In this document: positions 23,529 through 28,228 of the stretch, in pieces | Layout: every line of letters begins with the position of its first letter | How positions within the stretch are numbered: the first letter of the stretch is position 1 | Assembly: GCA_965240325.2 (NCBI GenBank) | Contig: OZ251244.1 | Location: forward strand, 558,001 to 622,000 | Length of the DNA stretch: 64,000 nucleotides | Direction: 5' to 3' | Source of the DNA: Rebecca billardiae RCC1528 | Lineage: Eukaryota > Protista > Haptophyta | Notes under the pieces: generated by a model | What the model saw: only the letters and a program-made list of their open reading frames with translations | Told to the model about the DNA's origin: nothing | Databases searched by the model: none | Made by a program: the position numbers and the translations under genes

Positions 23529-24203
23529 ATGCAGTCCGTGACCGGCACGCACCCGGAGCAGCGGCGCACGTCGCCGCCGCGTGGCGGCGCGGCGGCGCGC
23601 GGCCGCATCCACGACCCGACGCGCTACCTGTCGCAAAGTGCGCACGCGGCGATTCTGGAGCGGCTGGAGACGAGCGGCGGCGCGCAGACCGACAGCCGGC
23701 GCGGCTCGCGCCGCCCGTCGATCACCGGCCTGCGCAAGACGTCGCGGCTGCTGCTCCGCTCGAGCATGCAGCAGCGCCCCAGGACCGCCAGCGGGACAAT
23801 GAGCAACAGGCAGAGCAGCGGCTTCAACGGCAGTCGCTCGTCGACGGCGACGGGCACGCCGCTGGCGCAGGGCTTCAGGAAGGCGAGCATCGCCGTGCTG
23901 CCCGACGAGCGATGCGACAGCGACGTCGACGATCGCGACAGTCCCGCCCGCGGTGGCTCCGGCGCCCCGCCCGCTGGACTCGTCAGCGGCCTCAGCGGGC
24001 GCTCGAGCTCAGGCGGCGGCTGCGGAGCCTGCTCGGCGGCGTCGATGGCGACGACGGCTCCGCCCGGCAGCGGCGGGCGACAGCAGCAGGGGAATGCGCC
24101 CGCCGCCGCCTGCCGGTGGGGCGACGGCCGGGCCATGCCAGCAGTGGTCCTACCGCCCATCAGCACGGCGGACGAGGCTACGACTGGCAGCACGACGGCG
24201 TAG
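23529..24203 (+). CDS. Hypothetical Ser/Arg-rich low-complexity protein
   Basis: ORF from MQSVTG with GC3-biased codons and a short ordered patch (IHDPTRYLSQSAHAAILERLE); no family recognised. Confidence 0.35.
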   Translation: MQSVTGTHPEQRRTSPPRGGAAARGRIHDPTRYLSQSAHAAILERLETSGGAQTDSRRGSRRPSITGLRKTSRLLLRSSMQQRPRTASGTMSNRQSSGFNGSRSSTATGTPLAQGFRKASIAVLPDERCDSDVDDRDSPARGGSGAPPAGLVSGLSGRSSSGGGCGACSAASMATTAPPGSGGRQQQGNAPAAACRWGDGRAMPAVVLPPISTADEATTGSTTA

Positions 24204-24284
24204 GCGGTAGGGTCTGCCATAGTACTAGTAGGCTGCTTAGCTAGCTACTGCTAGCTAGTGGAGTCGTCGTCTATATATATATAT

Positions 24285-27200
24285 GTCTAGCCGTCCTCGT
24301 GAACGCCGACGCCAACTGCTGGCCGAAGGTGGGCACGCCGCCTGGCATGTCGATGCCGAGGCGGCTGCGTGTGTTCCTACTCAGTGGGATTTACGTGTCC
24401 TCATGCCTTGGCGAGCGGCAGCAGATGCGGTGGGCATGCCGCTCGCCGTCGACGAGACGCGGTGCGTGAGTGATCCCGTTTCATGGTGTGTTGGGGAGCA
24501 CCGCGTGGAGGAGAATCCCATTGAGTGATGGGAAGGAAAGGGGGCATCGGGATCACTCACGCACCGCGTCTCGTCGACGGCGAGCGGCATGCCCACCGCA
24601 TCTGCTGCCGCTCGCCAAGGCATGAGGACACGTAAATCCCACTGAGTAGGAACACACGCAGCCGCCTCGGCATCGACATGCCAGGCGGCGTGCCCACCTT
24701 CGGCCAGCAGTTGGCGTCGGCGTTCACGAGGACGGCTAGACGTGGGGTTATTGGTACAATAACTGATTGTCTAAGAGGACGACAAGAACGCCGGGCGCCA
24801 GCGCCGCTCATCAGCCACATCGCCCTCTACCAGACCATCGCCTCAAAGGGCGCTGCTCCCGGACAAACAGTCTGTCCGGGTTGTTCTGCCGCCCAGGAGA
24901 TCGATTTCCGGCGCCGGCCTCTGCCGCCTGCTTCGCCAGGCGCGGGCGCGCGAGATGGCTGCAGCCGGGCTCGTGGCCCTGCGTCGCCGGCGGCGGCGGC
25001 TCGCACGCGGGTGGCGCGCCGCCTGCTTCGCCAGGCGCGGCGTGCGAGATGGCTCCAGCCAAGCTCGTCCTGCGTCGCCGGCGGCGGCGGCTCGCACGCG
25101 GGTGGCGCGTCGCGTGCACCGACCAACATCTTTCGGCAACTCGGCGGTAAGCAACGCTCCGCATCGCGCCCCCTCGCGCTTCGGGCCACCGCCTCTTCTC
25201 TCTCTGTGTGCGTGCGCACCCTGTGGCTCTTCCGCACCCGCCCCGATCGCACCGTTCCCTCTTCGCCACATGCCTCCTCCTCCGTGGGTGCGCCCCCACG
25301 CGGATCGCTGCTCCATCTCTCCCGCCCTGCCTCGGGATCGCCCCGGTGCCAACGCCAGCCGGCTCCTACACAAGGACCGCTGGCGGCACACCGCGCGCCG
25401 GGCCCCGTGCGCACCCGCGGGCCATTCACAGCATCCGCAAAGGCCGTCTAGCCTTCTCCTGCTTCCGCAGCGCCGCGCCTCGGGGCCGGCTGCCTGCTAT
25501 CTCTCCTATTCGGGTTCCGTCTCACTCGCACTGCCCCACCTGCCCAGCCCCCGCTGGCCGGCCCTCGTGCGTGCGCGACTCACACGTGCCTTGCCCCCTT
25601 TCCTTCCCATCACTCAATGGGATTCTCCTCCACGCGGTGCTCCCCAACACACCATGAAACGGGATCACTCACGCACCGCGTCTCGTCGACGGCGAGCGGC
25701 ATGCCCACCGCATCTGCTGCCGCTCGCCAAGGCATGAGGACACGTAAATCCCACTGAGTAGGAACACACGCAGCCGCCTCGGCATCGACATGCCAGGCGG
25801 CGTGCCCACCTTCGGCCAGCAGTTGGCGTCGGCGTTCACGAGGACGGCTAGACGTGGGGTTATTGGTACAATAACTGATTGTCTAAGAGGACGACAAGAA
25901 CGCCGGGCGCCAGCGCCGCTCATCAGCCACATCGCCCTCTACCAGACCATCGCCTCAAAGGGCGCTGCTCCCGGACAAACAGTCTGTCCGGGTTGTTCTG
26001 CCGCCCAGGAGATCGATTTCCGGCGCCGGCCTCTGCCGCCTGCTTCGCCAGGCGCGGCGTGCGAGATGGCTCCAGCCAAGCTCGTCCTGCGTCGCCGGCG
26101 GCGGCGGCTCGCACGCGGGTGGCGCGTCGCGTGCACCGACCAACATCTTTCGGCAACTCAGCGGTAAGCAACGCTCCGCATCGCGCCCCCTCGCGCTTCG
26201 GGCCACCGCCTCTTCTCTCTCTGCGTGCGTGCGCACTTTGTCTCTTCCGCACCCCCGATCGCCACCGTTCCCTCTTCGCCACATGCCTCCTCCTCCGTGG
26301 GTGCGCCCCCACGCGGATCGCTGCTCCATCTCTCCCGCCCTGCCTCGGGATCGCCCCGGTGCCAACGCCAGCCGGCTCCTACACAAGGACCGCTGGCGGC
26401 ACACCGCGCGCCGGGCCCCGTGCGCACCCGCGGGCCATTCACAGCATCCGCAAAGGCCGTCTAGCCTTCTCCTGCTTCCGCAGCGCCGCGCCCGCGGGGC
26501 GGGCTGCCTGCTATCTCTCCTCTTCGGGTTCCATCTCACTCGCACTGCCCCACCTGCCCAGCCCCCGCTGGCCGGCCCTCGTGCGTGCGCGACTCACACG
26601 TGCCTTGCCCCTTTCCTTCCCATCACTCAATGGGATTTCTCCTCCACGCGGTGCTCCCCAACACACCATGAAACGGGATCACTCACGCACCGCGTCTCGT
26701 CGACGGCGAGCGGCATGCCCACCGCATCTGCTGCCGCTCGCCAAGGCATGAGGACACGTAAATCCCACTGAGTAGGAACACACGCAGCCGCCTCGGCATC
26801 GACATGCCAGGCGGCGTGCCCACCTTCGGCCAGCAGTTGGCGTCGGCGTTCACGAGGACGGCTAGACGTGGGGTTATTGGTACAATAACTGATTGTCTAA
26901 GAGGACGACAAGAACGCCGGGCGCCAGCGCCGCTCATCAGCCACATCGCCCTCTACCAGACCATCGCCTCAAAGCGCTGCTCCCGGACAAACAGTCTGTC
27001 CGGGTTTGTCGCCGCGGAGATCTGCTGTTTCCGGCGCCCCCTGGCTGCTTCGCCAGGCGCGGGCGCGCGAGATGGCTGCAGCCGGGCTCGTGGCCCTGCG
27101 TCGCCGGCGGCGGCGGCTCGCACGCGGGTGGCGCGTCGCGTGCACCGACCAACATCTTTCGGCAACCCGCCCACCCAGGGCCCGTTGGTCTGGTGCTCGG

Positions 27201-27890
27201 GCGGCGGGACCACAACACCCGCCGTCCGACCGCCCGGTCCTGCGGCGCTGCACTTAGGGCTCTTGGGATTTACGTGTCCTCATGCCTTGGCGAGCGGCAG
27301 CAGATGCGGTGGGCATGCCGCTCGCCGTCGACGAGACGCGGTGCGTGAGTGATCCCGCGCGGACGTCCGCTGACGGAAGGCTGAGCGCCTGCGGACTCGT
27401 CGACTGAACCTCCACCTGACCGCCCGGGAGCAGCACTGCTGGGGACCTAACCTGAAAAACCCAATCGTGTTGGGAGGCAGGGGGTCACATGAGCCCTAAG
27501 TGCAGCGCCGCAAGACCGGGCGGTCGGACGGCGGGTGTTGTGATCCCGCCGCCCGAGCACCAGACCAACGGGCCCTGGGTGGGCGGGTTGCCGAAAGATG
27601 TTGGTCGGTGCACGCGACGCGCCACCCGCGTGCGAGCCGCCGCCGCCGGCGACGCAGGACGAGCTTGGCTGGAGCCATCTCGCACGCCGCGCCTGGCGAA
27701 GCAGGCGGCAGAGGCCGGCGCCGGAAATCGATCTCCTGGGCGGCAGAACAACCCGGACAGACTGTTTGTCCGGGAGCAGCGCCCTTTGAGGCGATGGTCT
27801 GGTAGAGGGCGATGTGGCTGATGAGCGGCGCTGGCGCCCGGCGTTCTTGTCGTCCTCTTAGACAATCAGTTATTGTACCAATAACCCCAC
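24285..27890. mobile_element. 3.6-kb non-coding foldback/tandem element inserted in (TA)n
   Basis: ATATAT|GTCTAGCC...AACCCCAC|ATATAT; left hairpin arms 24285-24478 and 24548-24741; tandem units 24742-25853 and 25854-26867; right inverted arms 26868-27262 and 27491-27890. Confidence 0.9.
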
Positions 27891-28228
27891 ATATATATAG
27901 AAGTTCGTCGTCGCAGTCGTAGCAGCAGCAGCCACTACTGTATACACTCTACAGCAGATGACTACTACGACTGATGGCACTGCATATCATGTTGACGAAT
28001 GATGACGAGGACGATGTCGAGTCCGAGCACGGAGCAGTCGTCGTCACACTCGTCTGTCGTCACACTGACACTCTGACGACACTCACATCATGATGCCATC
28101 GTCGTAGTCGCGCACGCGCGACTCGACAACGCGCGATACGCGGCGCTGCTGCCGCTGCTAGCTAGTACGTCTTATCGTCGATCAACTACATGACGCGAGT
28201 TCATCAGACTCCGTCAACCACGCGGCGC

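Follow-up and report, generated by a model that had tools for sequence, protein, structure and literature searches.

The non-coding element at positions 24285-27890 of the window analysed here (the whole stretch of 64,000 nucleotides from Rebecca billardiae RCC1528, contig OZ251244.1, 558,001-622,000 of the forward strand) belongs to a family, F1, that probably counts, as a non-autonomous family, among the tyrosine-recombinase retrotransposons that have split direct repeats (DIRS order, Ngaro/PAT-like), the window copy being a rearranged member whose inverted joints are by-products. F1 was placed among these retrotransposons because sister families carrying its terminal signal encode a polyprotein of reverse transcriptase (RT), ribonuclease H (RNase H) and tyrosine recombinase, and F1 is a gene-less derivative of that clade. 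The further families are designated F2, F3a, F3b and F4. All come from the eukaryotic assembly GCA_965240325.2 (72 Mb, 41 contigs, ~70% GC). A preliminary description of the window copy had proposed a non-autonomous mobile element with precise ends and a DIRS-order affiliation, and both proposals are supported. It had also suggested an undescribed class, which we do not uphold, as the element is built on the split-direct-repeat plan of Ngaro/PAT elements.

The window copy is 3.6 kb long, has the ends GT...AC and is lodged in a TA run. Its left boundary reads ...TCTATATATATATAT|GTCTAGCC at 24285 and its right boundary ...CAATAACCCCAC|ATATATATAG at 27890, a terminus also given as AACCCCAC|ATAT. 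Three internal sites (24741/2, 25853/4 and 26867/8) read GGCTAGAC|GTGGGGTT and are exact inverted copies of the element's own end-to-start joint. The left end folds back with 194/194 complementarity (24285-24478 against 24548-24741, loop of 69 nt). The right fold-back, put at ~390 bp in the preliminary description, is real (26868-27268 against 27485-27890, loop of 216 nt), though it is ~92% complementary with gaps; in its best blocks 174 nt pair at 98% and another 115 nt at 97%. Inside the copy lie two units arranged head-to-tail, 1112 bp and 1014 bp in length. No inverted repeat links the two outer ends, apart from a 5-bp dyad of terminal GTCTA and subterminal TAGAC. On the borders, the joints, the left fold-back, the units and the relation of the ends, the preliminary description was accurate. 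No Pfam domain was found in the four open reading frames (ORFs) of at least 200 aa within the copy. Rfam returned no family in the copy and no self-cleaving ribozyme at its ends at E up to 5, and no hammerhead motif was present there; ribozyme self-cleavage as the process that defines the ends was dropped on the strength of that empty search.

A survey of 28 F1 loci besides the window copy revealed the canonical form, an A-x-B|A-y-B dimer of 1744 bp in which a short unit (Ux, 727 bp) stands head-to-tail with a long unit (Uy, 1017 bp) and the joint CCCCAC|GTCTAG lies in direct orientation. Ux and Uy have in common segments A (the first 194 nt) and B (the last 307 nt), whilst their middles differ. 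Approximately 12 of the 28 loci are exact Ux+Uy dimers and the remainder are truncated, chimeric or multimeric. The outer ends are invariant across the other loci, and TA runs flank 15/17 left and 22/25 right ends (exceptions are mostly GT or AC), as expected from the AT|AT target that had been proposed. Genome-wide, with chance levels set by reversed-pattern controls, 174 left and 187 right outer ends were found (controls 0-2), which places the family at ~175-190 insertions, nearly all in (TA)n. For the opening 262 nt of the window copy the genome offers at least 40 matches of 100% identity, and F1 is a very young family. Copies elsewhere do contain internal copies of the family's end-to-start joint: the 12-nt joint word has 75 genome occurrences against 0-2 for the reversed control.

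Between F1 and F2, F3a, F3b or F4, the common sequence is limited to the ends, with ~40 nt on the right and 5-15 nt on the left. Once joined, these right and left ends fold into a hairpin whose outer stem of 5 bp is separated by a 5x5 internal loop from an inner stem of 7-8 bp, and the AC|GT joint is located at the foot of the outer stem. Over the five families the stem positions are Watson-Crick paired in 60/60 cases, and at four pair positions both partners have changed in a compensatory manner. In the outer stem TAGAC/GTCTA is replaced by GACAC/GTGTC, and in the inner stem GTTATTG/CAATAAC is replaced by GTTATAG/CTATAAC or GTTATAA/TTATAAC. Folding z-scores of the joined-end hairpin range from -2.3 to -3.5. 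A genome search for the pattern of hairpin plus joint gave 158 occurrences, against one in the control; together with the counts of the joint word, this shows that the pattern is not due to chance. The true end-juxtaposing feature is this small hairpin of 5 bp and 7 bp, which is found in every copy.

The split-direct-repeat layout is likewise kept in at least four families. In coding sense the order in every family is A1-internal-B1|A2-spacer-B2, and in F3b the A repeat is 264 nt, the B repeat 452 nt and the spacer 87 nt. F3a and F3b contain a 99%-identical gene block, starting 25 nt past the stop codon, within diverged shells, and the element on contig C18 carries an F2 joint patch.

The enzymes of the clade are encoded by F3-type units. 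[quoted passage not shown] The F3 recombinase scores 25.9 bits against PF00589 and has the catalytic residues R...HxxR...W...Y (motifs RKAE, HSFR and RW..Y), which are kept in its relatives. Relatives of the polyprotein numbered 1449 in an exhaustive protein search and 3 in a word-indexed one. In the long relatives the ordered motifs D..F[NH]QF, SSN.AQR, YTDD, DAAKEG and NP.ADA.SRG stand upstream of the recombinase, and the F3 frame aligns to the profile of these relatives from motif C onward (hhalign, 100% probability, E = 5e-107). In a protein-language-model atlas the N-terminal segment falls among RVT_1/RNase H clusters (0.96-0.97). A search of the genome with the RT segment gave 10 loci with frames of up to 1481 aa, 8 of which lie, by coordinates, 2-3.5 kb from an F3-type joint. 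On C33, RT and recombinase are contained in a single frame of 1317 aa. The loci in the genome comprise one with RT and recombinase, several with RT only and four with recombinase only, the last being on C18 (open, 981 aa), C23 (open, 963 aa), C12 and C38 (both damaged). The polyprotein order of F3-type elements, as read from these motifs and alignments, is RT-RNase H-tyrosine recombinase. Of the longer relatives anticipated in the preliminary description, those with RT and tyrosine recombinase were thus found in F3, whereas genes for GIY-YIG and RepHel proteins are unlinked to F1.

An RT-less clade was considered and rejected, as the motifs, the profile alignment, the atlas placement and the search for RT loci all reveal an RT. 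The clade had looked RT-less because the Pfam model RVT_1 does not see so divergent an enzyme: no Pfam RT was matched in the F3 protein or in ten long relatives, and a single weak RVT_1 match was obtained in 24 relatives. None of the 55 RVT_1 matches in the genome is within 8 kb of any joint. No methyltransferase domain was matched in those F3 frames that were read, a set that leaves out the N-terminal part of the RT-bearing copies. A C5 DNA methylase does stand N-terminal to RT-RNase H-recombinase in 4 of 24 distant polyprotein relatives (including P0023), and in two relatives a CXXC zinc finger is placed there. A sequence search of the PDB with the polyprotein profile gave low-complexity matches only. 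Synonymous and non-synonymous differences in the recombinase gene number 9 and 7, respectively, too few for a Ka/Ks estimate to be of use.

With the family defined, the inverted joints of the window copy can be seen in context. Contigs C1-C16 contain 65 elements with both ends, of which 48 have no internal joint, 14 have a direct joint and 3 have an inverted joint only. Other copies share the GT...AC ends and the (TA)n flanks of the window copy, as the preliminary description had anticipated, whilst an inverted joint is not a trait of the family. Segments S1, S2 and S6 of the window copy (Table 1) are 100% identical to one subfamily, a, and segment S5 is 100% identical to another, F1b, all 401 nt of S5 being found at 100% identity in at least 12 other F1b loci. 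F1b is itself an ordinary direct dimer (e.g. C1:4020763-4022493), and S5 is not decayed, despite its 92% identity to canonical Ux. Two active subfamilies are combined in the window copy, a chimera with two strand switches, and its fold-backs are the scars of those switches. The 24-nt words spanning its two breakpoints each have one occurrence in the genome; hence the inverted form of the window copy has not propagated. At least four other copies combine correct outer ends with an inverted core and have different breakpoints, among them L020 (C10), C14:640162-641862, C1:3280939-3282148 and one on C34, and these copies differ in size. Inverted cores make up 3/17 of the joint-bearing elements on C1-C16, to which the window copy and the C34 copy add two. 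Because the breakpoints of the window copy are unique and the other inverted cores break elsewhere, the inverted joints are by-products that template switching has produced repeatedly, in a minority of copies, and not a designed internal complementary region (ICR) as in DIRS elements. A one-off template-switch rearrangement, which the preliminary description had named as the contrary outcome, is accordingly what the inverted joints represent, and it is not what the invariant ends represent.

Two other explanations of the inverted core bear on the same observations. Were it a functional ICR, a single strand would align both ends on the inverted joints, and the element would form a distinct, self-splinting class. 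The exact complementarity of the inverted joints to right end plus left end, the experimental finding that the ICR is essential in DIRS-1 (PMC7192593) and the 3/17 share of inverted cores all favour such a reading. Nevertheless, no inverted-core form occurs twice, the joints of canonical multi-copy forms are direct where there are any, and the right arm comes from another subfamily and is ~92% complementary, so that we regard it as highly improbable. It is also very unlikely that the inverted core was formed in place after insertion, by template switching at a fork or gene conversion, or is an assembly error. Both breakpoints are genome-unique, and the left fold-back, a palindrome of 194 bp without mismatch around a short loop, has a form that may result from an assembler or from faulty replication. 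Against this, the copy has clean outer ends and clean TA flanks, a similar product with other breakpoints is present at no fewer than four other loci, and the assembly has only 41 contigs. Moreover, the core mixes two subfamilies, each 100% identical to copies elsewhere, and rearranging one inserted copy in place cannot yield such a core.

Further accidents of copying are common in F1 and include chimeric units, internal duplications and multimers. Breakpoints cluster at Ux 100-113 (6/14, P ~1e-7), a hotspot just outside a long hairpin; the window copy adds one breakpoint to this cluster, at 101. Truncation of dimers is one-sided, with 8 cases on the left-end side and 0 on the right (P = 0.008). 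We propose that the F1 transcript lacks the extreme ends of the element, as in DIRS-1 (PMC7192593), and the hotspot ~100 nt inside the left terminus may be the end of the transcript or cDNA. F1 RNA would be copied in trans by the RT of its relatives, the internal joint would restore the terminal sequences absent from the transcript, and the recombinase would use the joined-end hairpin for insertion into alternating purine-pyrimidine microsatellites. The window copy could then have arisen in one cycle through at least three template switches on concatemeric templates, two of them between strands (24546/8 and ~27264-8) and at least one between subfamilies. The product would have correct outer ends and an inverted core passing three joints, the inverted joints being passengers. 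That split-direct-repeat elements can flip to a DIRS1-like layout in one replication cycle, and have done so repeatedly here, we put forward only tentatively, as a possibility that we think rather doubtful.

Several observations weigh against placing F1 among retrotransposons in this way. The retrotransposition step for non-coding F1 is one that we infer from sequence; the RT loci are tied to joints by coordinates alone; and genome searches found no element with RT or recombinase that has the exact hairpin variant of F1. The AC|GT joint and the AT|AT target have no identical core, and DIRS1-like elements follow a 3-bp junction rule in which the junction is identical to the target (PMC3266345). 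The order of Ux and Uy is fixed in dimers, though both joints look equivalent. Many joint-less single units are multi-copy, recurring among the C1-C16 elements in size classes of ~484 bp (8 loci) and ~700 bp. An internal joint would then not be a strict requirement, and movement at the DNA level by the recombinase alone could occur. These single units seem to be mobile. Examples are found at C1:4311085, C8:706290 and C11:998171, and four copies of the 700-bp class are spaced 8-15 kb apart on C5 (845777/859371/867999/883190). Lastly, any short target duplications are masked by the TA runs on both flanks, and one truncated copy, L023, has a clean target duplication of 30 bp. Such a duplication is not a product of a recombinase.

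The joint-less single units are one reason to consider Crypton-like movement through DNA only, in which the recombinase would excise a circle bounded by the ends and reinsert it via the joined-end hairpin, with concatemers and switches arising during replication of the circle. Single units are the majority and recur in size classes, the hairpin is complete only in a circle in which right and left ends are joined, and active Cryptons of Chlamydomonas both excise and gain copies (PMC9977147). We nonetheless consider this unlikely, given that the recombinase is in one frame with RT-RNase H, that the split-direct-repeat layout is kept in at least four families and that the breakpoint hotspot suits the end of a transcript or cDNA. 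An empty excision site was not seen either, though the present data could hardly have revealed one.

The duplication at L023 would suit a model in which another retroelement, Penelope-like or a CRE-like long interspersed element (LINE), inserted F1 by target-primed reverse transcription and produced its tandem and inverted units by template jumps from end to end. Location in microsatellites, one-sided truncation, tandem and inverted partial copies and the absence of a hammerhead are traits of Naiad/Chlamys Penelope-like elements (PMC8557442). On the other side, the genome contains one GIY-YIG match, near no copy, RVT_1 matches keep their distance from the joints (0/55 within 8 kb), and in coding sense it is the 3' end, rather than the 5' end, that is truncated. 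The terminal signal is, moreover, physically common to RT-RNase H-recombinase elements. Target-primed insertion is in our view extremely improbable; its Penelope-like form was dropped once the recombinase frame was seen to continue into RNase H and RT.

Next to no probability attaches to rolling-circle movement of the Helitron2 type, in which 5' terminal GTCTA and subterminal TAGAC would serve as asymmetric terminal inverted repeats, with a 3' hairpin and then a short tail behind them. The published 3' asymmetric repeat does lie 20-30 nt from the end, upstream of a hairpin, and 5' truncation and variable target duplications are known in these elements (PMC3627910); five RepHel ORFs are present in the genome. 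Yet the five RepHel loci, each read over 10-12 kb, have no such termini and no TA-run boundaries, and the signal is borne by RT-RNase H-recombinase elements. A link to Helitrons via C33 was also discarded, the F1-like piece near that Helitron being a copy in its own right, 478 bp long and set in a TA run. The RepHel loci themselves (L031-L035, L041-L045; on C39, C7, C13, C23 and C33) have open frames of 2606-3640 aa. Four of them are >99% identical over ~3 kb and then diverge at different points, and the C13 copy has undergone internal rearrangement, one block of 1.4 kb being inverted.

Table 1. Segments, joints and breakpoints of the window copy and its target flanks (window coordinates).
Feature	Position	Strand	Remarks
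Left (TA)n target flank	24272..24284		window sequence
S1, left terminus = Uy 1-262 (A = 1-194 plus 68 nt Uy-specific), 100% to canonical	24285..24546	+	
Breakpoint 1, one filler T between S1 and inverted core	24547		spanning 24-nt word genome-unique
S2, inverted segment A, 194 nt, 100%; left fold-back partner of 24285-24478	24548..24741	-	
Joint 1 (24741/2) in two-stem hairpin TAGAC/5-nt loop/GTTATTG-GTA-CAATAAC/5-nt loop/GTCTA	24737..24773	-	
S3, inverted long-unit variant, 1112 bp, ~100-bp internal duplication	24742..25853	-	836 nt 100% canonical, 285 nt 96.5%
Joint 2 (25853/4), hairpin as in joint 1	25849..25885	-	
S4, long unit in inverted orientation, 1014 bp, 98.3% identical to canonical Uy	25854..26867	-	
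Joint 3 (26867/8), hairpin as in joint 1	26863..26899	-	
S5, inverted 3' part of short unit (Ux 727-322), subfamily F1b, 92% to canonical Ux	26868..27268	-	
Breakpoint 2, strand switch at TGGG(A) microhomology	27264..27268		spanning 24-nt word genome-unique
S6, right terminus = Ux 101-727, 100% canonical; start within hotspot 100-113	27264..27890	+	
Right-end half of terminal signal: TAGAC, AATCA, hairpin GTTATTG-TAC-CAATAAC, CCCAC	27859..27890	+	
Right (AT)n target flank	27891..27899		window sequence

Around the window copy, an apparent ATG-initiated frame on the minus strand (window 24100-24222) opens ~60 nt left of the insertion, and the copy may occupy a promoter or 5' leader. The long ORFs neighbouring the copy gave no Pfam matches.

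A number of further observations concern the sister families. F2 (GTCTAGCCACTCC...CTATAACGCCAC) is found at L046:2601-7323 (C33:121600-126322), inserted in a TA run. There, a unit of 698 bp is an internal-deletion copy of the next unit, of 4025 bp, and an F2 ORF of 275 aa has no Pfam match. The F2 hairpin variant is the commonest G-type joint in the genome. F4 (L016:2386-3262, L007:2384-2872) has its first 15 nt and last 45 nt as in F1 and is otherwise unrelated. Truncated F4 copies are found head-to-head with truncated F1 copies, and one F4 copy begins at GGGATTT, ~112 nt from the left end, which is the position of the F1 hotspot. A hairpin variant, GTTATTGTGCCAATAAC with GCCAC, at C14:1864058, C17:2088743, C18:1045859 and C20:1489918 represents a putative further family of the clade. 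In F3 elements an array of ~36-nt tandem repeats stands just 3' of the recombinase stop codon (L046:9339-9692; L037/C38 10318-10516, merged coordinates). Logan runs ERR14847148/50/51 (L053-L055) contain a stretch of the F3 polyprotein at 94.6% identity in a different upstream context, and one Logan form, which jumps from mid-gene straight to the 36-nt repeats, is a deletion derivative. On the reverse strand of L045, from ~C33:775165 to C33:777130, an element with inverted ends TACAGTGGGC...GCCCACTGTA lies between two TA runs; it looks like a Tc1/mariner-type insert in the TA island of a short F1-like copy.

Metagenomes were also scanned with the hairpin-joint pattern, and the 120 matches were due to chance or unrelated, none showing homology to families F1-F4. 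L059, L061, L064 and ~30 metagenome contigs (Ga0056108/133/134/135) contain a repeat reading GTTATAC...TAATATAAC with GCCAC|GTCAC, from an organism of 45-50% GC. Its likeness to the hairpin-joint signal is superficial and extends to nothing else in the sequence; it may be coincidence or a distant analogue.

The replication of tyrosine-recombinase retrotransposons is among the least understood of transposition pathways, and to our knowledge experimental data on it exist for DIRS-1 only. F1 is young and high in copy number, with exact ends, a strict microsatellite target and a hairpin that exists only with the ends joined, and the same genome holds separate RT-only, recombinase-only and gene-less derivatives. 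From its abundant copying accidents one can read the points at which the polymerase begins, halts and jumps. The window copy would be one of several independent conversions from direct to inverted, and would show a route from a direct repeat to an ICR-like layout. According to Szitenberg et al. (PMC4157794), 'intermediate forms' are not observed; if our account is true, the inverted-core copies are those forms, and F1 is a natural system in which the evolution of ICR architecture can be tested. The clade also illustrates that Pfam-based screens can wrongly label a whole clade RT-less.

The hairpin has a parallel in integrons, whose integrases act on folded attC sites. If our account is true, F1 could be used to test whether its recombinase acts in a like manner on the folded joined-end hairpin.

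Among known systems, Helitron2/Helentron elements resemble F1 in having a terminal and subterminal 5-bp inverted pair around a 3' hairpin with a short tail (PMC3627910), but F1 is unlinked to RepHel genes, its target is TA rather than TT, and the terminal signal was present at 0/5 RepHel loci. Naiad/Chlamys Penelope elements have in common with F1 the partial tandems, adjacent inverted copies, one-sided truncation, microsatellite locations and lack of a hammerhead (PMC8557442). They differ in that no GIY-YIG/Penelope RT partner was found in the genome, while a sister family encodes a recombinase. Cryptons likewise have a tyrosine recombinase, no terminal inverted repeats and joined ends that guide insertion (PMC3212892, PMC9977147). 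In this clade, however, the recombinase is fused to RT-RNase H, its frame running upstream into both domains, which separates it from Cryptons, and the repeats are long and split where those of Cryptons are terminal direct repeats of 4-6 bp.

With DIRS1-like elements the likeness is confined to the window copy. Its internal sites exactly match the complement of right end plus left end, and the last of them adjoins the terminal fold-back, as the ICR adjoins the right repeat (PMC7192593). On the other hand, its outer ends are not mutually inverted, it has three ICR-like sites within whole inverted units where DIRS1-like elements have one ICR of 88 bp, and its layout is not inherited, the breakpoints being unique. 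Terminal inverted repeats, a family-wide ICR and a 3-bp junction equal to the target are all lacking, the joint being AC|GT and the target AT|AT.

The closest likeness is to Ngaro/PAT elements, whose split direct repeats of the form A1...B1A2...B2 (PMC13465315, PMC4157794) are those of F1 and its sister families. The F3 polyprotein has the order RT-RNase H-recombinase, and no methyltransferase of the DIRS type was seen among the F3 frames read. This group includes the algal Kangaroo as well as TOC3 and the non-autonomous TOC1 of Chlamydomonas. TOC1 is a non-coding derivative dependent on its relatives, and we liken F1 to it. With respect to membership, RT and RNase H are present in F3 and not in non-coding F1, and a tyrosine recombinase of the form R...HxxR...[H/W]...Y is present in five copies in F3 units. 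The differences from Ngaro/PAT elements are that F1 targets almost solely (TA)n (one sister family targets (CA)n), that its AC|GT joint has no short core in common with the target, that a covarying two-stem hairpin spans the joint in this clade, that the RT is too divergent for Pfam RVT_1 and that many F1 copies are joint-less single units. Its unusual traits are the microsatellite target, the covarying joined-end hairpin and an RT missed by standard models. Taken together, the family has the testable defining features of split-direct-repeat recombinase retrotransposons, a likeness by features rather than by phylogeny.

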